A DNA stretch of 63,881 nt, filler included, from Lenisia limosa (GCA_001655205.1; 12 parts of 12 records of this genome joined end to end with filler, not necessarily neighbours in it); one strand, 5' to 3'; numbered from the whole stretch's first letter, positions 10,374 through 29,574 are shown. Program-made: numbers and translations. The notes: a model not told the origin generated them from the sequence alone.

Positions 10374-10594
10374 TCTGCCTCTGCCCCCGATCTGGTGGGA
10401 TCGCGCCGGCGGGGCCCCCTTGATGCTACATTTCCATTTGCCTGTTCTTGTTTTGATAAGAGCCCANNNNNNNNNNNNNNNNNNNNNNNNNNNNNNNNNN
10501 NNNNNNNNNNTTAATTAATTAANNNNNNNNNNNNNNNNNNNNNNNNNNNNNNNNNNNNNNNNNNNNCCCCCCCCCCCCCTCTTTATTTCTATAG

Positions 10595-13500
10595 AACCGT
10601 CTCCCTGAGGATTTGAGCCAATTTCGCCAAATGGATGCCTGTGTCAAGGTGTTTGAAGACTACAAATACAGCCAACTCACCCCCGAACAGCTTCAGGTTC
10701 GCCTAGGGTTGCAGAAGAATGCATAGAGATATCATCAGCACTTCCATCTATTACACTCGCACCCTCAAATAACGGGCTCCATGTATTTTATTTTATTTTG
10801 AACAAGAGAAATAGTATAATACATTACAAATCTAGGGAAACAAATAAGTACACTGGATATCATAAACAAATTACCATACTTCCACGCCCCGCGTTTGTTG
10901 GCATTGTTGGTCTTGTATTATTGATGATTGTTTATATGATATATGATACTCTAATAATGATTATTATTAAATACTATATGATATATAATATTATAGAGCA
11001 GCAGCATCATCAAAAGATGGTTTGAGGAAGGGGAAAATGCTATCTTCTGTTAATAAAGGGCTAAACACTGCCCTTCTCAAGCTTCTTATTATAAAAGAAA
11101 AAGAAATCCGCAAGACATTCCCCTGGTAAGCATAGAAGAGGACTTCACAAAGATGTTGTGTGGGATAGAGGTTACTATGGCTCTTCTTGGCGATAAACGC
11201 CTATAAATCAAATACTATGATGTGACTATGCTGATTAAGGAATCCATCTATGGGCAAATTCATTATACCCAGCACGCACCTTGACGCCCTCCCCCCCACA
11301 TATGACACTCTCTCAGGATATTGCCAACTTGGAGGAGACGCTCAAGCTCATTGAAAAGGATGATGTTGAAGCCGTCAAGACTATGGTGCAAGACAAGAAT
11401 GTCAGTATCTTCAAGAAGATTGATGTATGCACGGAGAAACCAAGAAACTGGCGTTTCTCTTTTGGCTTTTGACGAACCCAGGGTCTCAATGGTCTTCACG
11501 CATCTGTCAAGCACAACGCTCCCAAGTGTCTTGACTACTTCTTGAGCCTCAAGCCCAACATTAAGTCAACCAACTCAAAAACGGTTAGTTTGCTATTTTT
11601 TAAAAGATGGTACCAAAATAGACTTGGAAAGTACTGGAGCTTTTCTCTTTTTGGATAGAGGGTTCCTCATTATTATGTTACGTGGACGAGTGGATTTGAT
11701 TTACTTTTCTCATTAGTCATTTGCGACTAGTATTTTATATAATATACAACTGCTAGTATAATATTATATGATATAGCTATATCATATGTAATATATCGAT
11801 ACTATATATACTTACTTATCCTCAAAAACGGTCAGAAGTTTTACTGTCCAGTCTGAGACCCTTCTGCAAGCCGCCGTCCGTGAGGCCAACTGCAACATGG
11901 TTGACATCCTCCTTCCTATCCTCTTGGAACAGGCACCTATTGAGCCTATGAAGGTTTGCTATTATCACCATTATTATTGAACCTCTGAAGGTTTGCTATT
12001 ATCATCATTGTTAATGAACATCCTCATCCTCATCATCATTGACCTCATCGGAACGTACCCACTTTTCTAGGTTGCTGAGTCTGAAGAAGAAGCTGCTGAG
12101 ATGGAAGAAAAGGCCAAGTAAGAAGGCTTAACCTCAGCCCACAAGTGATTTGTAATATTTGGTTTTATGTCCTTTACAAAGTGAAGCTTTCACACATCGA
12201 TCCCTCAATCCCTCCCATGATGAGTGCCTTTGTACCAATGTGCATTATCGAAATGGTCATAACTCCCCCCCCCCCAGGAAAGAAGCCGCCAAATCCGAGG
12301 CAACAACAATCCCGACCCTTCTTGAGCTCTGCAACGGGCTGCTGACCGCCGGCAGTCTCGGATGCACGCATTGTATCGCGGCCCTCATTAAACATGGCGC
12401 TGACGTCAAGCACGCAAGGTCATCAACCGTGAGCACGGCTTTGTGTATAATATAGTATATGATATGTTTTGAAAGCATTGTTTTGAAGCAAGCTTGACCG
12501 TGTAGTGGGAAACAGCGCTGCATGAGGCCATTCTGGGCGACCACGTGGATGCATGCAATCTGCTCATCAAGGAGGGCGCCGAGCTGAACATCATGGATTC
12601 TGAGGTTGGGAGGCATCTTGAATAGTGTGGGTGTGGGTAACATCATTGTGCTGAATTACCATCATTTCTGAGTTATCAATATTCTTTAGTATCAGTTGTG
12701 CAAGTGGTAATTTCGGTATTTTGGACTGGGACTCTCATCACGCTGCCAGAGCCGCACCCCCCTTGCCATGGCTTGTGAACGTAACCGCTTCGAATGTGCG
12801 AAGTCTCTCCTGGAGGCTGGCGCTCGAGTCGACATTGCGAGTGGCGTGGGCGGGATATTATATGATTTGGGGTGGATGCTGGATCGGAATTTGATCGTTT
12901 TATTTTTACCCATTCGAATGACTCATCTATTTCTGCCATTGGCACTGAATTAGTTGATTTTTAAAATAATATTGACGGTTTCTGTTAGGATTTAATCATT
13001 TGATAGGATACTTACTTCCCAGTCTGGCTACCCCTTCCACTTTGCCATTCGCAATAACAGCAAGGAAATGGCATGTCTTCTCATTCAGTACGGTGCCTCC
13101 AAGCACACGCCAGATTCTCAGGTTCGCTTCTTTTGGAGAAGAAAATCACAGTTTGAGTTATCACATGAAATCGGTTGACTTACCACAGCCAGTGTATATC
13201 ATATGATATGGTATGTGAATAATTATACAAGGGGTTCAGTTCCAGTCGTTTTTATGCTCATGGGGTCATGACACTTGGGTTTACCTTGATCAAGCAATGC
13301 CAGGAACATGTGTGTTTATAGCATTCCTTTGCTGCCGACTGCATTGACTGTCTAGGGAGTAACTCCGATGACCCTCGTGAGCAAGCTCAAAAACAAGAGG
13401 GAAATGATGATGGACATCAACAAAACCCGCAAGCTTGGTTTGAGGGATAACTTCTCTTCCCCATGGTCCTCAAAAAAACACATTTTCTCGATTCGATATA

Positions 13501-16230
13501 TTTGAGCGTTCTTTCTGCCCTTGTGGTCACGTGTGTAGCCTCAGTACCGCTGTCCTTCACACCACCACCACGTACCGCCGGCCTGGTTGCCGACCTCCTC
13601 ACCTCTGTCGAGCTGCTCAAGTCCGACCAGGAGGACATTCCTGTCTGCAAACACTGGGTCTTGTTCGGATCATGCGTGTATGTGGGGGGGGGGGGGGNNN
13701 NNNNNNNNNNNNNNNNNNNNNNNNNNNNNNNNNNNNNNNNNNNNNNNNNNNNNNNNNNNNNNNNNNNNNNNNNNNNNNNNNNNTGTCGGTAAAGTCTATA
13801 AATATCGATGTTGTTTTCTGAGTAAAGTGAAGTCTATTTAATGCAACATTTCATGTTTACAGATTTGGAAAGAAGTGTCGCTTCTCGCACCCACATGTTC
13901 CCATTATTGCACCCCCTGATGAGTCTTATTCCGTTTGTGGGATTGAAGCTAGGGCTTCACTTCGGTTCGAAAAAAGACGGAATTTCTCGATAAATCCTCG
14001 AAAACTATTCGATATTTTACTGGTATTTTTCAAACCGAAGTGAAGGCCAAGTTGAATTGTCTTGATTCACCCCTCCCGCTAACCCCTGCGAGTATATCAT
14101 ACATTCTTGCTCACCTTCCCCCTCCAGAAGCACAGTGCTGAAGATCTCTTTGAGGACTTCGCGGCGCATTTCCCTGAGCATGAATTTGCCATGTTCGGGT
14201 CCCGCATTTGCAAGTGGGGGGGGGTGGTCGTTTCCTTATATTCTGTAAGTGCTGTACCCCTCCGTGACACATCAGACTGCACACCCCCGGTAGCGACCTT
14301 GACGCCTGTCTTGTCACTGACCCATCTCTGCCCGAGGTCCTGGCATCCGAGAAGGCTAGGCTACTCATCAAGTACGCCCGGGCTGGGTCAATCCCCGGAC
14401 CGATTAAATATTCAGTCAATCCTTGTTTTTTTATATTCGGATGTTTTTTTTTTTTTTGCAAAATAACCGGAATTGTCGGCATACACGGATAATACATGAT
14501 ACAAATACAGCAGTAAGGAAGGAAACGTAGAATGCCCCCTATTTTGAGTCATTTGCGCTGTCCAGTCACAATACAGTTTGTGCGAGAAGGTGAAGAACAC
14601 CAAGTTCCCAAAGGACTTCACCATTTCTATTGTGCGCTACCCCAAGGAGTTCATCATGGTGCCTGTTATGACTCTGCTCTTCTCAGCTGACAAGGTTTGT
14701 TTTGGGCTCTCCGCAGAATCGTAGATCATATTATATTATCATAGAAACACATAATATATCATATGTACATGTATATGTAGCTAAAAAAATACATGTAGAA
14801 AAAACACCCAGTTTCATGATTCGGGTGAATATACAGGGGCAGTTTCATGATTCGGGTGAATGTACAGGGGTTTTATTTGCAAATTTGAGCGAATGGAGTT
14901 GAGTTTTGGATTTCCATCGCATAACCCTCAAGTGGACACCATGAACCAATTACCCCCACGTTTCGTAATGGTGTGATTCTTTGAGTTCCATGTTTCGTAA
15001 AAGTTTAATTATTTGAGTTCCATGTTCCGTAACAGTTTGATTCTTTGATTTCCATGTTTCGTAACAGTTTGATTCTTTGAGTTTTCTTCTCATATTTCCC
15101 TTTCACCTTCGCAGATGTCCTTCCAAGTCGATATTTCTGTCAACAACCACGAAGGCATTCACACCACTCGCTTCCTCAAAGACATTGTCAACCTCCACCC
15201 TGCCATCCACTCCTACCTGTTCTCCATCAAGCTCTTCGCCTCCAGCGTGGGTTCCTTTGGTCAAGAAATTTCAATAATTGTACACTTTTACCGATCACAT
15301 TATGTTGTTCGATATCAGTTCTCTTTAGTATTCTAAAATACTAGCATTTGTTCATTATAATGCAATTACATATGGTGGAATTTATCTGACGATGTAGCGA
15401 GGTATGACGGACGCTGCTGGACACTGGCAGTCCGCAACGGCATGGTACTACATGGCCATCCATGTCTTGATTCATGTGGGGAAAAGGGGGGTATAAACTG
15501 AACATTTGATGCACTGATAGCTTTTTTCTCATCACCAGTCCAACTACATCACTGTTGTTGATGAGGAGAACGAGGGTGACAACGGACCACATTTCAAGCT
15601 CGGCTCCAAGCCCATCGACTCACAACCGCCCTCTCTCGGGACCTTCAGAGGCTACTACAAGGTGAATGGTGATTCGCTGAAGATAGCGCCTTTTTCTTAT
15701 TCTTCTCTTTGAATGTTTATAACTTCTTTTTTTTTTGAAAGTTATTAACTGGTTGTAGAACTTCCACTTCCCTGCCTTTGCTATTGCGATCCACACAAAT
15801 GAACTGCTTAACAAGGTGGGCCTCTTTCATTGGCGATTGGAGGGCAACAGAATTATAAGGGGTACATAGGACCTTCAGTCCTTCAATTATTAAATGAATT
15901 TATTTAGTCCTTCAATTATTAAATGAATTTATTTAGTCTTTCAATTACTCCCTAATTAACCCTATTAGCCCTTCGACGACACAGGCGCCAGTGTGCTTAT
16001 CCTGCGGGCCTTCAAGCCTTGTGGGCGTGGGGGATGCTGATGTTTTAGTTCAATAGGGATGGCCATGCATTTCTCTCTTGAGTTTTTGCAGTCTTATCTT
16101 ATTTCGTGTAATATTCGTTTCTATCAAAATTCATGAGTTTCGCTTGAGACGTTCTCTATCTAACGTCATGTAGACCCCCGTCTGAACAGATCCCTTCAAC
16201 AGTCCAAGGCCACTAAGCTTGTCGGGTCAA
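10595..16230 (+). CDS. Ankyrin-repeat + CCCH zinc finger + TUTase/ncPAP-type nucleotidyltransferase (5'-truncated, 3' end uncertain)
   Basis: About 6 ankyrin repeats (GLNGLHASVKHNAPKCL, ETALHEAILGDHVDACNLLIKEGAELN, RTPLAMACERNRFECAKSLLEAGARVD); CCCH motif CKHWVLFGSCVFGKKCRFSH; phase-0 intron 13933-14127 joins to KHSAEDLF...FGSRICK|LHTPGSDLD (GS-x9-SDLD) and later QVDISVNNHEG. Confidence 0.8.
13950..14050. mobile_element. ~100-bp MITE family A copy (intronic)
   Basis: TIR TAGGGCTTCACTTCGGTTCGAAAAAAGAC and its complement; flanks ATTGAAGC/GTTGAATT (5/8). Confidence 0.85.
14800..15085. repeat. Intronic minisatellites: 30-bp x2 and ~33-bp x4
   Basis: CAGTTTCATGATTCGGGTGAATRTACAGGGG twice; CATGTTTCGTAACAGTTTGATTCTTTGAGTTC about 4 times. 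Confidence 0.85.
15875..15950. repeat. Intronic ~30-bp tandem repeat x2.5
   Basis: AGTCCTTCAATTATTAAATGAATTTATTT repeated. Confidence 0.85.
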
Positions 16231-16629
16231 TTGTAAACGCCATGTAGGATGTATCATAGAGTTAGAGGATGTATTGTTTTGAGAGTTAATATGCATGTAA
16301 GAGATTGTTGGGTAAATTGATTGAGGAATTAGTAATCAACAAAAAAAAAGNNNNNNNNNNNNNNNNNNNNNNNNNNNNNNNNNNNNNNNNNNNNNNNNNN
16401 NNNNNNNNNNNNNNNNNNNNNNNNNNNNNNNNNNNNNNNNNNNNNNNNNNNNNNNNNNNNNNNNNNNNNNNNNNNNNNNNNNNNNNNAGAGGTTTTCATC
16501 AGGTAATTGTCATTTGTGGTGCTCTAGTACTCCTTGACTCAACTCACAATACATATTTCAAAATAATACTATTCTACTTTCTTCTGATTAAGTTGATCTC
16601 CTTGGCCTTGGTTTTGGGCTGTTCATAGT

Positions 16630-19600
16630 TGATCAAGCTCTAAAGTTGGTCAGCGCTGATGAAAAGGAGGTCAGTCAGCTACAATCGAAAACTCATTCCA
16701 ATTGTATTTTCTCTTGAAAATAAGTCAGCGAGAAAAGAAGGTGGTTTTATAGATTAGAGATATAATATCATCAGGAATAGTTTACAATCTGACTAGCGTA
16801 CGCCCTTGATACACTTTGGTTGGGAGTTGGAGGAGTAAAGATGATAACACCGCAAACCTTTTCCGTTACACAACGAGCGTTTTGACCTGAAGGGTCGGGT
16901 ACAACTCCAATAACTTTTGTGTGTCTGTCCTGTGAAAAGCGAATCCTGAGATGACACATTCATGTAAAACCTGACATGCTCTTACGTTCCAAATTTGAGT
17001 ACATGTGTCAGGTCAGGCAGATCTGCAGACACCCATCCAATTCCCTGAGGTGTCAATATGGCTGCAATACTTGGGCCTTTCATCTTCAATCAGTTGGGGG
17101 GGGGGGGGGNNNNNNNNNNNNNNNNNNNNNNNNNNNNNNNNNNNNNNNNNNNNNNNNNNNNNNNNNNNNNNNNNNNNNCCGTATTTAGTGCCAAAGTGAT
17201 CTAAAAAAAAGCGCTTACAGTTCCAATAACAAGCAGGTTGGTGGATTGGGGGATGTGGAGGGAAGTGACCCCGCTTCCAAGCTGGAATTGCTTGATTGGG
17301 TTAATGATTGATTTTGCAATATCTTGGTTCAAGAAATCGTCCTTCCAACCTTAGTCACTTTGTGGTTTGTTAAATCAACAACACACAAGTGTCCCATTTT
17401 GTCACCAGTGATTAACGTGTTGCTGAGGATGTTAGTGGAGGTTGGATATTTGGCAAAAAAAGGCAACGGGTACCATTTGTCAGTTCAACTTCTCTATGGC
17501 ATTTTAGGCATGATGCATTTCGAGTCGTGGATATGCTTTAATTTATTTAAGCCCAAAGGTCGGCACTGATTATTGCATACCGGTTGAGGGTGAGCGCCAT
17601 CGCTACGATTTCAGATACATGAGGAAGGGACATATTTCCGAGACAGGTCTGATGGGATGAAATGGAAATGAAACACCGATGATGGCAAATGCTGCGAGAA
17701 TACTGAGATCCGAGACATTCCAAAAAATCTTCGATCATACTGTATGAAATAAACTGCACGGAGTACATCGTATGTGCCTTTATTATTCAGAAACCCCAAT
17801 ACATGAGTTGCAATGTCCCAAATGAAGATAGTTGACTCCTCATTCTGGAAGGTCGCAATAACCTGAGCGTAAAAAGGGCACCAATAAACAACCCATGTCG
17901 TTTTTTACAATAATAGAACTCTTGTCAATTGCCTTGGTGAAATCTCAGCCTACCAGTGTTCCAAGGCAAATGCTTGCAACTGAGCAGGTGATAGAAGCAG
18001 CAAAATCCGACGTGTCAACCTGTACTGTAAAATCCATGTTGCGATCTTTCACATTGACCTGAAAAATATTGTACATGTCTTTTTCGGACGGAGTGACACC
18101 ATGTACAACGGTATGAGTATTTATTTTAAATTGCTGGTATTCTTGTTTCAAACAAACACGTATGTACCTCGAATAGAACCTTGCCCTTCTCGACGTCAAC
18201 GAAAGACCATGAGCCGTCGGATACAGCCACAACCGCGGTTTTGCCGTTACGTGCGAATGAGAAGCCTTTAATTCGTCCACTTGGTATTTTCACACTGTTC
18301 TTGACAGCGAACATGTTCTATCAAGAGTGAGAGTGATGAGGGCAACATATTCAAGTATGACAATTATTCTCACCAAGAATGATTATAACATACTAGAAAA
18401 TTGTGTTTGAAGGAGAGTTACAAGGTCAAATAAAACAATCCTACATTCCTGTAATGATAGAAGGTGATTTTTGATTCAGCATCAATCACAGCGAAAAGGT
18501 CGCAATTAGCAGCAACTATCATGTCCACCTTGGCGGGGTGTGCAGGAAGTCGTTGGGGGATCTAATAATCAGAGTGAATAACAAGGTCATACGCAACATG
18601 ATATCATCTTTATTCTGTTGTTTGGAGCTATGTGTATATTCCAGATGTAATTTAATGTATATGATCGTAGCTTTACCACATAACGTACTACATGGTTTAC
18701 TCGCTATAACGAGTGATATCTATTGAGACTTATTCCATGATTGTTTATTGTTTGGAACCAAATTGACGTTCTCATCATATTGGGATAGTATCAACAATGT
18801 GAGACTCCGCCTACCACTAACGTGGACGTTTGGATCAATACAAGGTTGCCGAATGTTGTGGCAACGACAGCATGGTCGGAGTCTAAGAACGCTACGGCTG
18901 CAACTGGCCCTCCAATTTTCTGGATTATAAGCAAGGGTATGACCAAATCTGGATTGTGTCGCAAGAGGAAGTTTGAGAGTGGTTTATGATGTACCAACTC
19001 CACTTATCATGATATGGGCTTTCCTGCGGTCAAAAAAAGAGTGATTTCTGGATAAATCCTCGATAAATATCAATTTCGGAAATTAGGGAAGCCCTAATAA
19101 TGATAATCATTCACCTTTCGCTCCAAAACTAATATACCGTGATGATAACGCAGCTTACTGGAAGAGCGAACGAGTTTTTTGCGAATATTTTGGTGATATC
19201 GCATCGTACAAGTTCATCATCGCCATCATCATCATCAGAGTCCCTGGAAGGTGAATGTTTCTCTCTAAGAATTAAAGTGATATGTAGCATTGTGAGAAAA
19301 ATAGAAACGACAATTGTTTGATGAACAGCAAAGTGTTCCTAATTCATTGACTAAAAATAAATGAAAATAGAAAAAGCTGTTTCAATTCAAAAGTTCTAAC
19401 TTGAAGAGAATGTTGAGAGATTCTTTTTCCAAAAAACGACAAAATTGATTGGATTCCTTGATTTTACAATTTATTTGGTAATAATGACCCCTTTACTCCA
19501 TGCTTTCCAGTGGGATCAGAGGACCTTCTTTTGGAGGTACAATGTTTTCATAGGCAGACAAATTCCTGTTGAATAACGCTTCATTCAACAACTAATACTT

Positions 19601-20140
19601 GATTTACTTCAGTTAAGGCTGCAACTTATTAAAAGATCCACATATCAAGTCTATCCATATGACGATTATTGTCGTACAATTAATTTTAGAAGTAGGGTGT
19701 TCCAACTTATTTGTTGTGTGAACCTACTCTATTGCCTGGTCCCTTTCACGAATCAATTTGGCTACCACCCTTCCGGAACTCTCTTGTTGTGTCTTAAGAT
19801 TTTCTAAATCCTAAATTATGTGAATACTATTTTCAATTCAAAGACATTGATTTCATGATAACTCTTGACCTTACCTTAAGGGCATTTTGCAGCTTTGCTT
19901 CTAAGTCAATATTCTTCTGGACAACAGTCTGAAGATGTCATCATTGTCTAATATCCTCTATCAAGTTGAGATTTACATGCTGATAGTCTATCTCCCCAAT
20001 TGTACTTCAGTTGTAGTGACCTTGAACAATCGTTAGGTTATTTGCAATGCCCATCCAGTTGTCACCCATTATCACATACCTCATATCTCTTTTGTGCTTC
20101 AAGGAATATATCCTCCATTTCTACGATATTGGGATGGATG
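16630..20140 (-). CDS. WD40/beta-propeller-like protein, possibly with an N-terminal coiled coil
   Basis: Exons with beta-strand/WD-like pattern: VAAVAFLDSDHAVVATTFGNLVLIQT, AKVDMIVAANCDLFAVIDAESKITFYHY, IKGFSFARNGKTAVVAVSDGSWSFVDVEKG, EESTIFIWDIATH; upstream helical exons KNIDLEAKLQNALK and MEDIFLEAQKRYE; joining of 19490-20140 to the rest is unproven. Confidence 0.5.
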
Positions 20141-20420
20141 GCTTGCAAGAAGAGGGACGATACTAACGGAAAGGAAAAGCAAAACGGGGCAAATGGGGGT
20201 TTTCACAACAGGCAACTTGGTAATTACAATATGTTATTGTTGTAGTAGTGTTGCATGGAGATGGTGTCATAAAACACTGTTGGATGCAAGCTGAATGAGA
20301 AGCCCTAAGCCAAAAATTCCTAATAAGGCAAGTTTCGGGGGAATGACTGTTTTAAATTCCACTTCTAGTAGTTGAGATTACGGCGCTATTATCTGTCCGA
20401 CCACTATTTATTTCTGGCAC

Positions 20421-20477
20421 TTCCCCGAGCCGGGCCTTTCAAAGACTTGGACTGGACCCACGGTTGGACCGGGGAAG
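20421..20477. mobile_element. 57-bp miniature element, copy 2, flanked by direct repeat TCTGGCAC
   Basis: TCTGGCAC at 20413-20420 and 20478-20485; termini (C)TTCCCCG...CGGGGAAG are inverted repeats. Confidence 0.8.
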
Positions 20478-20769
20478 TCTGGCACCAACCGTTCAGTGTT
20501 GATACTGTAGATTTCGTCTCTATTTTCTTCTCTCGGCAAACTCCATTTCAAAATTATAACTTGCAAATATTCTCGAAAGATCATACAGTATTTTGAGATA
20601 GTTTGTTGGTTGAATTTCATTCAGTATCGTATATAAAGGTAAATACTTAGTATATTACTTATCAATAATATGTGTATATTGTGGTAACAATTTCAATGCG
20701 TAACCCGAGTTTGAAATTGACAATTGACCATTAAAAGAAACACAGCTAATACAAATAGAAAAACGACAC

Positions 20770-22500
20770 CATGAACAATATGATGGCTACTCAAGCCCGG
20801 ATATAAACGTCACAGAAGACACCAGAATAGCCACAGCTTCCAGAACCACGGATGTTGACAGCAGTGGGCTCAGCGAAAGGGGCTGAAAGGTCAAAAACAG
20901 CTACTCAAAATACTGTCTGAGAAGTGGTACTCTTCAACGGCTACAATGCAACAAAAGATGAAAAGCTCCAATACTACACGTCGGGTCCATGGAGAGCATT
21001 CATACCGATGACTGCAAGCAGGAATATGCCACAGAGAAGACCAGGACTATGGAGAGCGCGTGCCGAGAGGCGGGGTGCTGTGGGGTCACAGGGATAAATA
21101 TCAACTTCCATCAGACTGAAGCACCATCACCGTTTAGAGGACGCGATTCGGTCTTCATACGAATTACACCATAATACCTCCATGAACTGCAGAATGTTGG
21201 AATAGAACTTTGGAGAGTCACCAAAAACGTTTTTGTCACCATCTGCTTCAGACTCAATGAGCATAAACACTCCGCTATAGACCTGAGGGATGGGTGAAAA
21301 TAAACTTCAAAGAAAAATTCATTCAAATATGGAAAAGCAGTCTTCATTTACCCAGTACCCCATTTGATAGTGTTTTTTACACCGTTTTTGATACTGCAGG
21401 AATGCTCTCAGAACAGTTAAATAAGGTACATATTTGCGTATAACTCAAAATAAATATATCAGATAGTAAGTTTATCATAGTATATCTAATTAATAATCTC
21501 TTTTTTAGAATGCAGTGAAGCCGCAGCCGTCCCAGCTCACCACCAGGGAGATGAAGATCATGGCGGACCGAGTCCATGATATGGCTTGTGACAGATACGA
21601 AGCAGTGTTCAGTACTTCGAAGATCATTCCAACATATGGTAAACTAAATGCTGAGAAGTGCAGTTCAATGATATTGACTTTCATCGTAACGAAAAAAGCA
21701 ATATGAATGAAAAGTATGAAATTCTGACACATAAATCAATGAATATGAAAATCTGATAATAAAAATTCTGGGAATATAAAAAGTGTTTTTTAAAAAAACA
21801 AGACTCGCACCCAGAATGTCGATGCATATCTTGCTTTTACAGTCATAATAACGACCTCTAAGCAATACAGCAAGAATAAAACAATCTTTGTTCTCATTTT
21901 GAACATATTTCCAGCCCCACTTTGATACGATAGACCTCTCAATGATGGATTTATCCGGGACATGCGCCACCGCCACCCTAAATGGTAAATCGCTTGAGGA
22001 CTTTTGGTTCCGTTAAAAGACTTGGTTCCTCCATAGATCGCAGAAAATCACCAATACACCATGTCTTACCAGAGGAAGAAAGCTGCTAAAGCATGTGGAA
22101 CTATTGCATCAGTGATGACACCTTGGAGGTCAACAGTTTTATTCTCAGAGCATTATTGGGTTATTCTCAGAGCATTATTGGCATTTGTAGGTCAATTAAA
22201 ACATGTGTTATAGTACAAAAAACAAGAGTGAAACTGAATGGACGTGACATGGCCATAATCCACAACGCACCATCATTGGACCTGATCACCCCCCAAATGG
22301 ACCAAAGAGTGACACAACAGAGCACTGTGGCTGCAACCGTGATGGCTGTGTTCAGAGAATCACTCGTGAAAATCTGGACTCTAGTGGGTCAGACAAAACC
22401 CATTCCAAGATTTTAAAGGTAATATTCTGATGTCAAAACATCCACCTAAGCAAATAAGTTCAGAAAACCCCGCTCCTACTGGAAAACAATGAACATAATA
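20770..22500 (+). CDS. Hypothetical spliced gene
   Basis: One clear AG/GT-bounded exon 21517-21639 (KPQPSQLTTREMKIMADRVHDMACDRYEAVFSTSKIIPTY); other exons ambiguous. Confidence 0.35.
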
Positions 22501-22562
22501 AGGGCCACAAATGACGTCACCAAAATACTAACCTAAGTTGTCAGAAAGGGAATTGTTGTGTC

Positions 22563-23340
22563 TCAGTAAATCCTTGAAATATTACTCGGACAACGACCAA
22601 TATAATTCATAGTATGGAGGAATATGATACTATGACCCACTTTAGCTTCGGTCTCATGAGTGACAACACGTTCCGCAAGTTGTGATGAGAAGAAACACAC
22701 CACTTCCACCAAGAAGACCCCCTCAACAATGCACAGCAGTGTGCCTGGACAATAGTGAGAAGCAACGGTCCGTTTTTTAATTTTGAAAATTATCTCCCAA
22801 TGAAAGCTGATCACACGGTGTTGGTAATAAATCATTAAGAGCAAAACAACAGTGGGATGTAAACGCTACATGGCCAACCGATCCAGCCGATAGAGAACGC
22901 CGACACAGTAGCCACCATTCCTGGCAGCATAGAAACCAGGGAAAGGGCCATTGATATCGAAACTACGGCTGATCCCGCTGTGAACACCATACTGTCCTGT
23001 GGAACGTAAAAGGAACAAATAAGAAACAACAAATTCTAGATGTGTGATATATTTTCTGTTCAACAAAAACATGGGAAAACATTTCTTTTATTGTGTAAGA
23101 TGACCAAAATAAGCCACAAGAAAGGATGGCCAAGATTACCACCCGAAGCCAGCCAACCAATACGGGTACAATAACAAGGGTGACTGCCATCAGAATGTGG
23201 TAAACCACCAGCATGATCACTGCATATCCAATTGCCTCGGGCGAAGTCGCCGCCGCCACTAACAGAAGGATAACTTCAAAACCCAATAGAAGAATATTGA
23301 GCATAGAGTTGAGAGGGGAGAGCCCCAGAAGGAACAACAT
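22563..23340 (-). CDS. Uncharacterised multi-pass membrane protein
   Basis: Three exons with long hydrophobic stretches (LNILLLGFEVILLLVAAA, IGYAVIMLVVYHILMAVTLVIVPVLVGW, AVVSISMALSLVSMLPGMVATVSAFSIGWIGW, TLLCIVEGVFLVEVVCFF). Confidence 0.65.
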
Positions 23341-23658
23341 GATCGACCTCTACTGAACTACTCAATGCGTGAAAAACTATCTACCCTTTTTCAATAGATT
23401 TAACTAGGAATATACAATTAGTTGCAATGGAAGAGGGCTTGAAGAGGGCAATGCAAGAGAGGAAGAAGGGGCCTAAATTTATATATAGTTTTTTTTTCTG
23501 GGGATTCAAATGTAACATGTCGCCTTTTAACAGTGACTGGCTCTCTTTAGATGCCTTTTAGCGAGAATAGGTAATAAATAGGTTTAGTGAGATAAATTAG
23601 GGAACTGTGAACTTCTTTGGACGAGTAATCCTAGATCTCATAATCCCTAGGAAATATA

Positions 23659-26600
23659 ATGGTTGAAGTTGGCAGTCGAGTGGGAGTAGATGGTGCTTGT
23701 GCAACAGTTTGTTATGTTGGCGAAGTAGAGGGAACAAAGCCCGGAGTCTGGATCGGCCTGCAGTGGGACGATCCCGCGTGGGTTGGGCATGGTTGACTAT
23801 CATAACCCCTCTTTTTTTTGGTATTTTTTTTTTTCCATCCCTTTGGAAATATATAGATTTTATTGATCAGTTTTATTCATATTATAAATTAAGTCAATAA
23901 TTGGTTTGAAGCACAACTCATCCATGTGAATAGCCGAGGCAAGAACGATGGAAGTGTCAAAGGAAAACGCTACTTTTCTGTGGACTCCCCAACAGTGAGA
24001 TTTGATTTGATTTGCATGAGCTAATTTTTGTTGTGGTTGCTTCTTGTTATGAACTCAGTTTTTTTTTTATTGAGCGCAACACTACATCTGTGCAAAATCA
24101 TTGAGTGAATGAAAATATCTTTGATAACTGTGGATGCCTTCAATCAGACCCAACCTTTTATCATGTCTTAACACACCAGGGTGCATCGTTTGTACGTCCG
24201 GCCAAGCTGACTCCCACAATGTCTCTTGAAGACGCCATCAGGAGCCGCTACCTGCAAACCTTCGACTTTGGTAGGGCGGCGATGAGGAAATTATTTGGTC
24301 TGAGCGGACAGTATGATATAAACTCGAGTTAAACATGTACATGGAGATACTCTAAGTAAACAAATCAAGTCACGTACTTTATTGTCGAAACGGTTATAGC
24401 AATAAAATTGATGCCTGCGATTTGAATTTTTACGTTACCCTGTAGATAGTGACAAAGACTCGACGTACACATCATTTCTGGGAGGTGACAAGACAGTTCA
24501 TGTAGAGATTGTCGGGGCTGGACGGTGAGGGGGTGGTGGTAACACTTTTGGACCCCTTTTTAACAACAATATATTTTTCTCAAAGATTCTTGGCAATTTA
24601 GTATGCGAATTGGCACATTCTCACTGCCGCAGAGCTGCGTCCTCTGATAATCTGCTGACGTTGCAACAAGTTTCGGTCTCAGCTGCCGAAGTCGGCCATG
24701 TGGCTAGCAAGGAGCAACTTGGCGAATTGGTTCCAAGTTGGGGGGGGGGGGACGAATTATTGTTTTGTGTGAAGATGGAGTGTGCAACGCTGGAGTGGGT
24801 CAGTGAGTTGTTTGTCATAACGCTGGGAGTGGCTGTTTTATGTTTATCGATAATTGCTCAGAATGTGAGCAACTAAATTTGAGGTCTTCTCTCTTCACTT
24901 CCTGGAGTGTTGTCTGCGATATTGTTGAGGCTCTCCCGAAACTGAAGCACATTATTTTGGTTAGTTATAATGCTTGGGTTTGAAAATGCCATCTTCACAT
25001 TACATGTGAATTAGGATAAACACTGGCATGGTTGAAGTACAACAGTATTCTTTAGAGTTAAGGAATAATAATATGAAGAATTAAGCTATAAGCCCTCTCA
25101 GCCTCTCACTGTTAAGCTATAAGCCCTCTCAGCCTGTCACTGTTTTAGGATGGATGCCTCCTTGAGAACCCTCCTCTTCCCGAGGACCCGCTCTTTGAAA
25201 GATGCAGGGGTAAGATGTCTTCTGACTATAATACTGTTATAGCTATCTCTTATAAGGTCGAGATACTTCTTTTTCTTGTTATATCTCCATACACTGTACA
25301 GAATTATGCATAATATGTACCAGACAGTTTTGTACACAGCGGTGTTCATAGTACCGTTGTGCACTGAGTGTAGTGTTACTCTGACCTGCTTTAGTTTGTC
25401 TGGGAAAACTGTCGATCCTCTCATTGAACCGGACGGGACTGACATGGGACATACTACACCCCATGTTAAAGTAACTTGGGATGGAATTTCACATTGATGT
25501 TGAGGCTGTACATTCTTCCACTTTTTTCTGATACTACCATGATATGACACAATAAAATGAAATTGCATCCTCAATATAAACGTGATAGTCTAGTCATCAT
25601 CAATATGATATAACGCCAACATTGTATTGTTAATAGTTCCGGCTGAACCCTTGTACTTGTTTTTTTAAGATTATAATTTTCATGTTTGTAGTTCTTTGGA
25701 CCTCAATGAGCTGTATTTATGCTTCAACGGAATCGAAAACATGGGTATGTGGTTATGGAATTTTCCTGGTATTGCCAATGTTCTTCATTTAACAGCATGC
25801 CTTTTTTGCAGTTTTACTGTTAGCTTTTTATTGGTTTTTATTGTGTTTATGCTTTGCATTGTTCAAGAAGTTTATTGACGTATTTGAAGTTTATTGCTGT
25901 AGTTGAACTTCTAGCTTATGGTTTCTATTCTTGTTTTAACTGCCAAGATCGCGAGGGAGGGTTTGCCCATCTCGAGAGACTCAACATTTCGGGTAACACA
26001 CTTCAGTGGCCGCCCAGTGCCCTTTTATCTCTAAAGTGGGGAGGGGGCTTTTCTCTTGCTTGTAGGGTGGGGAAATATTAAAGGGCGAGTAATAATCACA
26101 GCGAACAATGCACTTGAGCATTCTGATACTTTACATTCAGTCTTACCCATACTGTTCAGTTTGAAGAACCTTCATGTCAATGACTGTGGGTTAAAGACCC
26201 TTGCGTTTGCTACGGGCGGCGCTTTTGCCAATCTCTCGTCAATATCGTGTCTTGATAATGCCTTCGATACGGCTAAAGGTGGGAGGATAATAATACCCCT
26301 CTGTGGGGAAAAGAACAACTCATATCCATGAATCATCGCCATCCAAGACCCCCGCCCCCCTACTCTTACACTCGAAGATGGAGGGACCGCCTCATTGGCG
26401 TTGTATCCATCGTTGAGACGACTGCGGTACAACAGCAAGCTCTTTGACATCGAGGACGAGTTCACCACCCGGAGGATTGTCATAGCCCGTCTCCCAAAGT
26501 TGGAACTTCTCAACGGTTCTTTGGTTGGGGGGAGGAGGGTATTGTTGTGAGTTCAAATGAACTAAACTGCGCTTCAATTCAGCGGGGGAAATAGTATACA

Positions 26601-28028
26601 TCAGATACATTTGTCATTTTATATTATTAATATTCCCTCACTTGGGTTTAACAAAGCCTACATCTTATGAAATGATACCAAATGAAGCTTTCCCAATGGT
26701 AAATGATAATCATCAAAGATTCAATGCAATATGGGAAGCCTCATTTGTTAGATTACATAATCCCTTCAGTCAGACTTAGCATTTCTGTTTCTATTTGGAA
26801 TCTAACTCCAGAAAACATTGCGAACTCACTGCCTCAGATTTCGCCGCAACAATTGCTTGATGCTGAGAGGAAGTACTATGATTTCTTTGGGGTACAAGGT
26901 AACAGGGAATATCTTTATGCAATATCTAAACAGTGGCACTCATTTTTCAATTCATAATATGAGTAAGTAAGGTGACATCTGAAATTTTGTAGGACTATTA
27001 TTACCGCACAAAAAAGGACCAGACTTATTGTTGGGCAAAATACATCATGTAGAAAGATAATATCTAGCCAACATTACACACCAGGTGTCTTTTTATTCTG
27101 TAACAAACATCTTGATGATTCACCCTCACATCCTAGCCTTTTCCATGCCCTCAGAGGAGTTTTCGGCACTACATCCGCGATACTGTGAAATTGCTGAGAG
27201 CCTCGGACGTCCTGCCATGACCACTGTTGACAGCAAAACAAAGGGGCTTGTTTGTATGGGGGGTTCACAAAAGGGCTTGTTTGTATGGGGGGTTCACAAA
27301 AGGGCTTGTTTGAATGGGGGGTTCACAAAAGGGGCTTGTTTGAATGGGGGGTTCACAAAAGGGGCTTGNNNNNNNNNNNNNNNNNNNNNNNNNNNNNNNN
27401 NNNNNNNNNNNNNNNNNNNNNNNNNNNNNNNNNNNNNNNNNNNNNNNNNNNNNNNNNGGGTGAGGTGTAATACTGCTTCAGTAAAGCCTGTTTGTTTATT
27501 TGATTATCGAAACCATAGTTTTTAAGAGTATTATCCCGTTCCTATTCACTGTTTACCCAGGCTTGACCTTTGATGATGGTAAAAACAAGGCTGAAAAGTC
27601 TGTTCCTCCCTTTTGCTCGTTAAGAGCGCTTATGGTATGAAGGCTTCTTCGAATATAATCCTGACATTATGGATAATATATTATTCTTGCAACTATGTTC
27701 TGGAATAACTGGTAAAGGCGTCAGCGCGCCACTTATTTGGCTTGAGACGCGACCCTACGCTGTGGCAAAAAGGCCTATTTGAGGGCGAATTGTTCCGACC
27801 AATTACGTCACAACGACCTATTGAAGACCAGGTGGGTGGTTTGTCAGACTTCTGTATGCTTTTCACAAATTGCAAGGACTGTACTGAAGAATTTGCAATG
27901 TGATAAGTTGTTTAGAGCTCCTTTTGTTTTTAATACAAGAAGAACCCATTGACACTCAGGTCCTGACAACAAATGTGATTATGGTACGGCGTTGGGACTA
28001 TGACCCCAAAGATGAGGCCTTTATGTAG
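23659..28028 (+). CDS. TBCE: Tubulin-specific chaperone E (CAP-Gly + LRR + ubiquitin-like)
   Basis: MVEVGSRVGVDGACATVCYVGEVEGTKPGVWIGLQWDDPA|RGKNDGSVKGKRYF (CAP-Gly), GASFVRP, LRR exons (LERLNISGN, LKNLHVNDCGL, IVIARLPKLELLNGS) and RKYYDFFG. Confidence 0.88.
27238..27368. repeat. ~30-bp tandem repeat x4+ in a TBCE intron
   Basis: AAAGGGGCTTGTTTGWATGGGGGGTTCACA repeated up to an N gap. Confidence 0.9.
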
Positions 28029-29259
28029 CGGTTTTCTTGTCCTGCCAATCGTATTTTTTGTTTTTTCATTTCCCAGCCAATTATAAAATTCATTTACAGC
28101 TCACATCCCTTCTCATGTTTCAGTATTCTATAACGATCTTTAAAATTACATATATTCAGCGCGCAGCTTTGGAATGAAGTCAGAGAATCGCATTTCAAAA
28201 ACAAATGCATCAGCCAGAGAAACTGAGTCGTTCTAAAAAACAATAAATAGCAAAATACAAGATATTGGACTTAGATGGACCGATGGTGGTTTCATATAAT
28301 GGATAGGTGAAGAAATAAGGAAACAAGAGGTGAATGGGCGATATAATGTCCATTCGTGAGTAGCGCAAGGGCACTGGGATGATAAATATAAAAAAGATCA
28401 ATGAAAAATATAACTATGTAACTTTCAGTTAACATTGATCAGTTAGAATGATGAGACAAAGTGACAAAAAAAAAAAAAAAAAAAAANNNNNNNNNNNNNN
28501 NNNNNNNNNNNNNNNNNNNNNNNNNNNNNNNNNNNNNNNNNNNNNNNNNNNNNNNNNNNNNNNNNNNNNNNNNNNNNNNNNAATATCCCTAATTATGAAG
28601 TTCCACACCTTGAGGAAAAGCCCAATCGCCACCCAGACTACTATAAATAATATGTATTTATTTCCCCAGGGAACTCCGCCTCAGGATTCAGAAAGCCAAT
28701 GACAGAATAAGTCCACATGTTTGATTGTTGGGGTAATACTCTTTTTAGTCTTCCTTTGATTTTTCACCACGAATGATAGGATGAAAGTTCCCAAAAAAAC
28801 CATAAATAAAACCTGATACCATGCTACTTCTTGNNNNNNNNNNNNNNNNNNNNNNNNNNNNNNNNNNNNNNNNNNNNNNNNNNNNNNNNNNNNNNNNNNN
28901 NNNNNNNNNNNNNNNNNNNNNNNNNNNNNNNNNNNNNNNNNNNNNNNNNNNNNNNNNNNNNNNNNNNNNNNNNNNNNNNNNNNNNNNNNNNNNNNNNNNN
29001 NNNNNNNNNNNNNNNNNNNNNNNNNNTTCTGACTTTAGTGTTTCACAGTAGTTACATCTATTACATTAAATTGTATTGACATAATAATATGTGAAAGGGA
29101 TAATGTGTATATTTACAATTTCCAGGGAAAATAAAATAAAAATAAAACGTCTGTTGCAAATCAGAATAGCATACTATACGATATACTATATCAGTTGAGC
29201 ATACATGTACATCGCCACAATGTTTTGTGTTACCAAAAAACTGTTCACTCCCCCCGAAA

Positions 29260-29430
29260 CAGGCTCCCACTTCTTTTCTTCCATCTTCGCTGGTTTTGTA
29301 TTTTTCACCTGCATTTCACTGGGGACAATTTGCCTCCTGCGCTCCGGAGCTAAAGTGACCAACGCTGGCATGGTGGCTTCGATGTCTTTGACAGGCTTGT
29401 AAACCGGAGCAGTTGACCTTAGTAACCTGG
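29260..29430 (-). CDS. Isolated exon of an unidentified gene
   Basis: C-rich acceptor then LLRSTAPVYKPVKDIEATMPALVTLAPERRRQIVPSEMQVKNTKPAKMEEK; reading frame not certain. Confidence 0.35.
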
Positions 29431-29517
29431 GGGAGTGAGGGTGTAATATGGGGAGGGGGGGAGACGTAACATTGGCCAAGGTCCCGATAAAAGGAGGGGA
29501 TGATATTAAAATCAACA

Positions 29518-29574
29518 ATATCAACCCACAATATCAACCCACAATATCAACCCACAATATCAACCCACAATATC
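29518..29574. repeat. 13-bp tandem repeat x4+
   Basis: TCAACCCACAATA repeated up to the gap. Confidence 0.9.

Follow-up and report, generated by a model that had tools for sequence, protein, structure and literature searches.

A putative ankyrin-CCCH-nucleotidyltransferase fusion gene of Lenisia limosa, compared with known RNA 3'-tailing enzymes

Non-canonical poly(A)/poly(U) polymerases are usually targeted by separate partner proteins, or by CCHC, C2H2 or RRM modules. The closest described systems are the Cid1/TUT4/TUT7 enzymes, GLD-2, TUT1/Star-PAP, and the ankyrin-CCCH proteins of plants and algae; ankyrin fusions are also common in protists. Here a locus of Lenisia limosa (assembly GCA_001655205.1) is compared with these systems. 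The window, which is the whole stretch of DNA analysed, comprises 63,881 nucleotides (nt) made of 12 parts joined with filler. The piece of interest occupies places 10567-29574 and is one 19-kb contig (C6284) of the 49.0-Mb assembly, which contains 11,727 contigs. An earlier note, made from the sequence alone, had read positions 10595-16230 as ankyrin repeats and a CCCH zinc finger fused to a nucleotidyltransferase. Our analysis favours, with modest confidence, a single gene that encodes an ankyrin-CCCH-nucleotidyltransferase protein, which by analogy might be an RNA 3'-tailing enzyme.

The sequence of C6284 is eukaryotic and very intron-rich, with no sign of a human or viral source. The gene model was built from the three forward frames, and the open stretches were joined at GT...AG sites. 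It contains 20 exons on the + strand, from the ATG at 10631 to the TAG at 16245-16247 (1971 nt, 656 codons), with zero internal stops and GT-AG boundaries at all introns. The exons average about 100 nt, and the introns range from 57 to 620 nt. The GC content is 52.5% in the exons vs 38.3% in the introns, and the third-position GC rises from 62% in the N-terminal half of the model to 70% in its C-terminal half. Direct reading and the spliced model recovered every sequence feature that the earlier note had listed, each at its place. The end of the feature, given as 16230, had to be revised: the stop of the main model is the TAG at 16245-16247, and the structure after 15815 is ambiguous. Searches against Pfam, the PDB, the protein library and metagenomes were run on single exons rather than on the joined protein; the joined translation served to check the frames and as the tblastn query for the paralogue loci of the same genome. 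Splice sites were scored with a position weight matrix derived from the gene's other introns, and the 1009 AG sites in the piece were scored for comparison.

Exon 12 ends with ...PPDESYS at 13932, followed by a GTTTGT donor, and exon 13 begins, preceded by CCTTCCCCCTCCAG, at 14128. The two boundaries share phase 0, as the earlier note had read them, and the intervening sequence, a junction intron of 195 nt (13933-14127, + strand), is ungapped. The acceptor at 14128 scored 11.79, higher than any other acceptor of the gene and among the top 0.2% of the AG sites; the donor at 13933 scored 3.23, which lies within the gene's range (-0.5 to 9.1). An alternative phase-0 donor at 13897 has the same score as 13933, and its use would only shorten the linker. 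Exon 12 is the sole coding exon available upstream of exon 13, and we infer that the two are spliced together.

The enzyme part has no independent start of its own. The 195-nt spacer lacks an ATG in any frame; going upstream from exon 13, its frame is closed by the TAA at 14080. Among the ATGs in 13863-14213, those at 13895, 13919 and 14180 are out of frame, and only the one at 14191 is in frame. It encodes the M of MFGS, so that the only in-frame ATG does lie one codon before FGS. Upstream of M14191, exon 13 encodes a helix and a strand (AEDLFEDFAAHFPEHEFA), which in this fold come before the G-S motif; a separately started enzyme would therefore lose both. The lack of a usable separate start and the strong acceptor at 14128 are the main arguments for exon 13 as an internal exon.

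Two adjacent genes would be the main alternative, and we regard it as unlikely. The ankyrin-CCCH gene would then end in the spacer (TGA 14041) or in an unseen terminal exon; the enzyme would be expressed separately, for example by spliced-leader trans-splicing at 14128 with M14191 as the start. The very strong acceptor would also suit a trans-splice site, and the read-through frame is open for 36 codons; whereas a protein started at MFGS would be truncated as described above, with no other ATG to rescue it. The spacer also offers little room for a terminator and a promoter, since about 100 of its 195 nt belong to a miniature inverted-repeat transposable element (MITE). Moreover, none of the polyadenylation motifs AATAAA, ATTAAA and TGTAA was found in these 195 nt.

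The MITE (13949-14051, no strand assigned) was identified by repeat search and by its genome copies. Its terminal inverted repeats (13949-13974 and 14026-14051) are 26 nt long and 88% complementary. A first-look search of the 49 Mb gave 1053 candidates, and the 40 scored copies are 88-97% identical; the element therefore looks recently active. Without the MITE the junction intron would have about 95 nt, which is typical for this gene. Unspliced read-through from exon 12 adds 36 codons and stops at the TGA 14041 inside the MITE, as had been pointed out before, and an isoform with only the ankyrin and CCCH parts is possible by this route.

Exon 13 (14128-14213, +) and exon 14 (14276-14371, +) together encode the first nucleotidyltransferase helix and strand, the FGS, the x9 and the SDLD. 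Exon 14 matched positions 27-53 of NTP_transf_2 with an expectation value (E) of 0.036. Exon 15 (14577-14694, +), supported by its frame and GT-AG sites and lacking a family match of its own, spans the palm strands that connect the DxD to the third Asp. Exon 16 (15115-15246, +) contains the third catalytic Asp (QVDISVNN) and the next helix, and matched positions 115-135 of MTPAP-like_central (E 0.051). Exon 17 (15398-15475, +), exon 18 (15539-15661, +) and the sure part of exon 19 (15759-15815, +), all placed by frame, together encode the nucleotide-recognition helix, then an insert and the putative beginning of the PAP-associated region.

The catalytic motif AMFGS-RICKLHTPG-SDLD is interrupted by the 62-nt intron 14214-14275, and QVDISVNN follows 69 residues after DLD. 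Thus the triad proposed in the earlier note is intact, with all three catalytic Asp residues kept, and the arrangement follows the hG[GS]-x9-13-DxD pattern with a third Asp in an h-D-h strand, by which the Cid1/GLD-2/TRF4 enzymes are recognised. The two sub-threshold Pfam matches are collinear and belong to the same clan. Their scores are 14.9 bits for exon 14 (cut-off 21) and 14.1 bits for exon 16 (cut-off 27), in a domain that is split over four exons and was scanned exon by exon.

A comparison of the joined model with the canonical Cid1-like loci of the same genome by tblastn aligned three blocks. The block VDISVNNHEGIHTTRFLKDIVNLHPAIHSYLFSIKLFASSRGMT matched VDISLNNVLPYYNTTLLRAYAESDPTVRSLCMMIKLWAKNVGYS of the paralogue on C5426 with 34% identity over 44 residues (E 0.022). 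This match spans the exon 16/17 splice (IKLFASSRGMT / IKLWAKNVGYS), and therefore supports that splice. A further block aligned MFGSRICKLHTPGSDLDACL with VFGSVLTRLVLPKSDIDVVV of a canonical paralogue, and the third, collinear with it, aligned QVDISVNN... with NVDVSFDI.... The neighbours of the catalytic residues are also typical of the family (VDISVNN and IKLF-x3-RG-x2-DA); the pattern VDhShNN...T..L......P.....L...IKhaA...G...A fits what we take to be the Cid1/GLD-2 family signature. The genome also contains canonical Cid1-like nucleotidyltransferase genes on C9407, C5426, C5101, C1592 and C8025, which Pfam recognises exon by exon. The enzyme part of the fused gene is an outlier, far more divergent than these genes.

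It is a rather improbable alternative that the fusion is real and its C-terminal half is a non-tailing domain, such as a binding or regulatory module or an enzyme with another substrate. The extreme divergence of the domain would fit this possibility, together with the weak domain matches and the blank PDB search given below; so would the ambiguous 3' end, for which one of the splice models lacks the usual DP-x-x-N strand. However, the G-S, the DxD and the third Asp all persist here among neighbours typical of the family, whereas inactive relatives, such as the inactive N-terminal modules of TUT4/7, have usually lost them.

The zinc finger that precedes the enzyme is encoded by two exons. Exon 11 (13539-13677, +) contains the linker and the first finger half (CKHWVLFGSC) by direct reading. 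Exon 12 (13863-13932, +) contains the second half (VFGKKCRFSH), followed by PHVPIIAPPDESYS. Between them lies intron 11 (13678-13862, +), with a GTATGT donor, a TTTACAG acceptor and an assembly gap (13698-13783) after a G run. On the left flank of the gap, exon 11 ends with ...DIPVCKHWVLFGSC and two bases (GT) at the GTATGT donor at 13678. On the right flank, the TTTACAG acceptor is followed by A TTT GGA AAG AAG TGT CGC TTC TCG CAC. The 13677/13863 splice completes a codon (GT+A = Val) in frame, and rebuilds CKHWVLFGSC-VFGKK-C-RFS-H, which has exactly the C-x8-C-x5-C-x3-H spacing of a CCCH finger and bears out the finger reported earlier. The second half alone matched zf-CCCH_4 with 18.5 bits (cut-off 24.6, E 0.0017); the score falls under the cut-off because exon 12 carries only half a domain.

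This gap also separates the ankyrin part from everything downstream, and its length is an estimate. It might in principle join an ankyrin gene to an unrelated CCCH-nucleotidyltransferase gene, but such an artefact is very improbable. The flanks hold complementary finger halves with matching splice phases (2 nt + 1 nt), and exons 11 and 12 are both single-copy in the 49-Mb assembly. The halves therefore do not come from two members of a repeated family, and a misjoin would need a chance match of two unrelated half-fingers; the scaffold join is thus sound. Because the gap is intronic in the model, its estimated length leaves the frame untouched. The gap may hide a small extra exon, though the finger leaves no room for one. 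The position after a G run also points to read failure. The assembly gaps, this one included, and the start of the contig come directly after homopolymers (10567-10579 C, 13687-13697 G, 16341-16350 A and about 17100 G); the gaps thus resemble failed reads at homopolymers more than doubtful scaffold links.

The N-terminal part is an ankyrin stack. Exon 2 (11317-11424, +, phase 0/0, GT-AG) forms a helical lead-in. Repeat 1 is encoded by exon 3 (11482-11583, +), which aligns in register with the other repeats, as does repeat 2 in exon 4 (11852-11953, +; weak Ank_3, E 0.15). Exon 5 (12071-12117, +) is an acidic linker, whose phase 2 junction to exon 6 completes a codon, and exon 6 (12278-12428, +) aligns as a divergent repeat 3 with an insertion. 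Repeats 4, 5 and 6 scored above the Pfam cut-offs, namely exon 7 (12506-12604, +; Ank, 29.1 bits, cut-off 21.1), exon 8 (12750-12845, +; Ank, 24.7 bits, cut-off 21.1) and exon 9 (13023-13121, +; Ank_3, 24.2 bits, cut-off 22.3). Exon 10 (13356-13437, +) aligns as a partial seventh, capping repeat, and has a phase 1 donor.

The stack thus consists of six full repeats and one partial repeat, which agrees with the "about 6" of the earlier note. The seven repeat exons are in register with the consensus xxTxLxxAxxxNxxxxxxxLxxxGA, and three of the seven exceed the curated cut-offs for the 33-residue repeat of Pfam Ank/Ank_3 (clan CL0465). Each repeat occupies one exon, and the phase-0 boundaries fall at an identical position of the repeat (exons 3, 4 and 6-10). 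This layout is the pattern expected of exon duplication. The ankyrin repeat exons are given as 96-102 nt (11482-13437), with one repeat each and phase-0 introns.

Several results weigh against the fused, active enzyme. The donor at 13933 is weak, and 20% of random GT sites score as well; the matching phase at the junction alone has a one-in-three chance. Exon 16 found no orthologue among 1.84 billion representative proteins, where its three matches were spurious, being tandem-repeat proteins without a nucleotidyltransferase domain. A self-match of exon 16 would score about 88 bits, and therefore its own protein and orthologues with at least ~55-60% identity are absent from that library. Metagenome scans with the open frame of exon 16 and with exon 6 were blank, and a genome-wide paralogue search with exons 11, 12 and 16 returned only the gene itself. 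The weak donor, and a fused architecture seen in no orthologue by the protein-library and metagenome searches, would both agree with two genes. A search of the ESM Atlas with exon 16 was uninformative (best score 0.83, unnamed clusters).

The enzyme half shows its own weak points, which would agree with a non-tailing domain. No enzyme exon reaches a Pfam cut-off, and exons 14 and 16 gave no match in the PDB sequence search at E up to 10. PAP_assoc (PF03828) was not detected in any exon, and the genome-wide scan for it lists four other loci and not this one. The likeness to the PAP-associated region is therefore one of motifs only (LGTFRGYYKNFHF..., and IIRDP or KPFDD), in 3' exons that are ambiguous. 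In exon 13 the FGS is preceded by some 22 residues only, presumably fewer than in Cid1-family enzymes. The nucleotidyltransferase domain is, judged by its sequence, very divergent. Where the gene begins and ends is also uncertain. Taken together, the fused-gene reading of the earlier note stands in part: the ungapped and phase-compatible junction, the top-ranking acceptor, the lack of an upstream ATG and the intact triad argue for it; the mediocre donor, the lack of orthologue or paralogue matches, and enzyme exons that all fall below the Pfam cut-offs do not.

At the 5' end, exon 1 (MDACVKVFEDYKYSQLTPEQLQ, 10631-10696, +) has a strong donor (CAG/GTTCGC, score 9.13). An acceptor-like TTTCTATAG/A at 10594/10595 (score 4.13) lies 28 bases from the contig edge at 10567; exon 1 may therefore be internal, starting at 10595, with more exons past the contig edge. 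At the 3' end (15816-16247, +), the alternatives were compared by splice-site scores and translations. In model A, which is guided by homology and uses weak sites, exon 19 extends to 15861 and is followed by 16174-16247 (...HWRLEGNRIIRDPRLNRSL...NAM, TAG 16245-16247). Models B and E use the donor at 15816 (AAG/GTGGGC), which with a score of 9.95 is the strongest donor in the gene and has phase-0 acceptors at 15969 and 16203. Model B continues to a terminal exon at 15969-16040 (PFDDTGASVLILRAFKPCGRGGC, stop TGA), and model E continues to 16203-16247. IIRDP and KPFDD are each similar to the (E/D)DP strand seen in the paralogue (AVEDPLLPKND), and a Pfam scan of the 3' alternatives gave no match that favours any of the models.

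Two readings of the 3' end were given up. The tblastn match RLEGNRIIRDP / RLTGNRPVRSP, considered as support for exons 19/20, was spurious, the copy in the paralogue lying downstream of its true EDP motif. PFDDTGAS (from 15969), taken at first for a certain exon and later for no exon at all, was kept as the alternative model B. The ambiguity of the 3' end leaves the catalytic core and the fusion unaffected.

The palindrome ATATCATATGATAT, allowing up to 2 mismatches, has 8 copies between 10971 and 14736, all in the gene's introns (1, 3, 6, 8, 9 and 15), and is absent from the remaining 13 kb of the piece (0.18 expected). The element, AT-rich and palindromic, is dispersed in the genome, with at least 3000 matches at up to 1 mismatch vs 695 for the backwards control. 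Four tandem duplications with periods of 29-37 and 2-4 copies also lie in or at introns (11938-12019, 14809-14870, 14956-15083 and 15877-15947). The first of these duplicates the donor of exon 4; its second copy cannot be used, since a stop lies in the read-through. Downstream of the gene are a WD40-like exon (18129-18317, - strand; ANAPC4_WD40, 23.9 bits; Prp19 WD40, E 7e-4) and open frames resembling leucine-rich repeats (LRR; 25824-26547, + strand; LRR_1, E 0.076), in which ...ARLPKLELLNGSLV resembles what we take to be tubulin-folding cofactor E. Neither neighbour has an evident link to the fusion gene. An Rfam scan of the C6284 piece found no RNA gene.

If the gene is read as a single unit, it would encode a single protein of some 650 residues, or more if the N-terminus extends further. 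A stack of six to seven ankyrin repeats would be followed by a short linker and a single C-x8-C-x5-C-x3-H finger, and after about 35 residues by a template-independent ribonucleotidyltransferase of the Cid1/GLD-2/TRF4 type with three catalytic aspartates. By analogy, the ankyrin stack would serve to dock the enzyme onto a partner, either a protein or a complex; single-stranded RNA would be kept beside the active site by the CCCH finger, and its 3' end would be extended by the transferase with untemplated A or U. Both activity and substrate are inferred from this comparison.

A word search of the literature for an architecture of ankyrin, CCCH and nucleotidyltransferase, TUTase (terminal uridylyltransferase) or Cid1 returned no paper describing it, and no domain-architecture database was queried. 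A paper on the diplonemid mitochondrial proteome was considered as a precedent and set aside; ankyrin occurs there only in a negative repeat set. We tentatively suggest, as a possibility with less than even chances, that the protein represents a lineage-specific and previously undescribed class of tailing enzyme, which combines a CCCH reader and an ankyrin platform in one polypeptide; the choice of target would then belong to the enzyme itself and not depend on partner proteins. The gain would be modest, as the architecture may already sit unnoticed in domain databases. A natural ankyrin-CCCH fusion, if real, would nevertheless be a further route for targeting 3' tailing, and would offer a compact enzyme in which the positioning of an RNA 3' end by a lone CCCH finger could be studied.

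The putative fused protein shares several properties with the known systems. Like Cid1, TUT4 and TUT7 (the TENT3 group), it has the motifs of a Pol-beta-type fold, namely the hG[GS], the DxD and the third Asp, and the helix that would lead to the PAP-associated region. In TUT4/7 the zinc fingers also flank the catalytic module and help to hold the RNA. However, these are CCHC knuckles and a C2H2 finger, and the module is duplicated (one inactive and one active); whereas the 656-residue translation contains a single transferase module, one CCCH finger and ankyrin repeats, and no C-x2-C-x4-H-x4-C. The sequence similarity is too low to place the enzyme in the TENT3 group or in any other subfamily, or to assign a nucleotide preference.

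GLD-2 (TENT2) is likewise a minimal catalytic core that depends on something else to find its RNA. It lacks an RNA-binding domain and borrows one from GLD-3, RNP-8 or CPEB; whereas here a finger and a docking surface would be built in. TUT1/Star-PAP also has an N-terminal zinc finger and an RNA-binding element fused to a Cid1-type transferase. Its finger is of the C2H2 type and its RRM lies inside the palm, with neither CCCH nor ankyrin; no C2H2 or RRM Pfam match was found in any exon of the present gene, nor in its translation. The plant and algal ankyrin-CCCH proteins (the ankyrin-bearing tandem zinc finger group, such as AtSZF1/2) presumably share the order of ankyrin repeats followed by CCCH, and a role in RNA binding and turnover. 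They are taken to have a tandem pair of fingers and no enzyme, whereas the present protein has a single finger and a transferase. For now, the putative fused protein is best filed as an architectural variant of the Cid1/GLD-2-type family.

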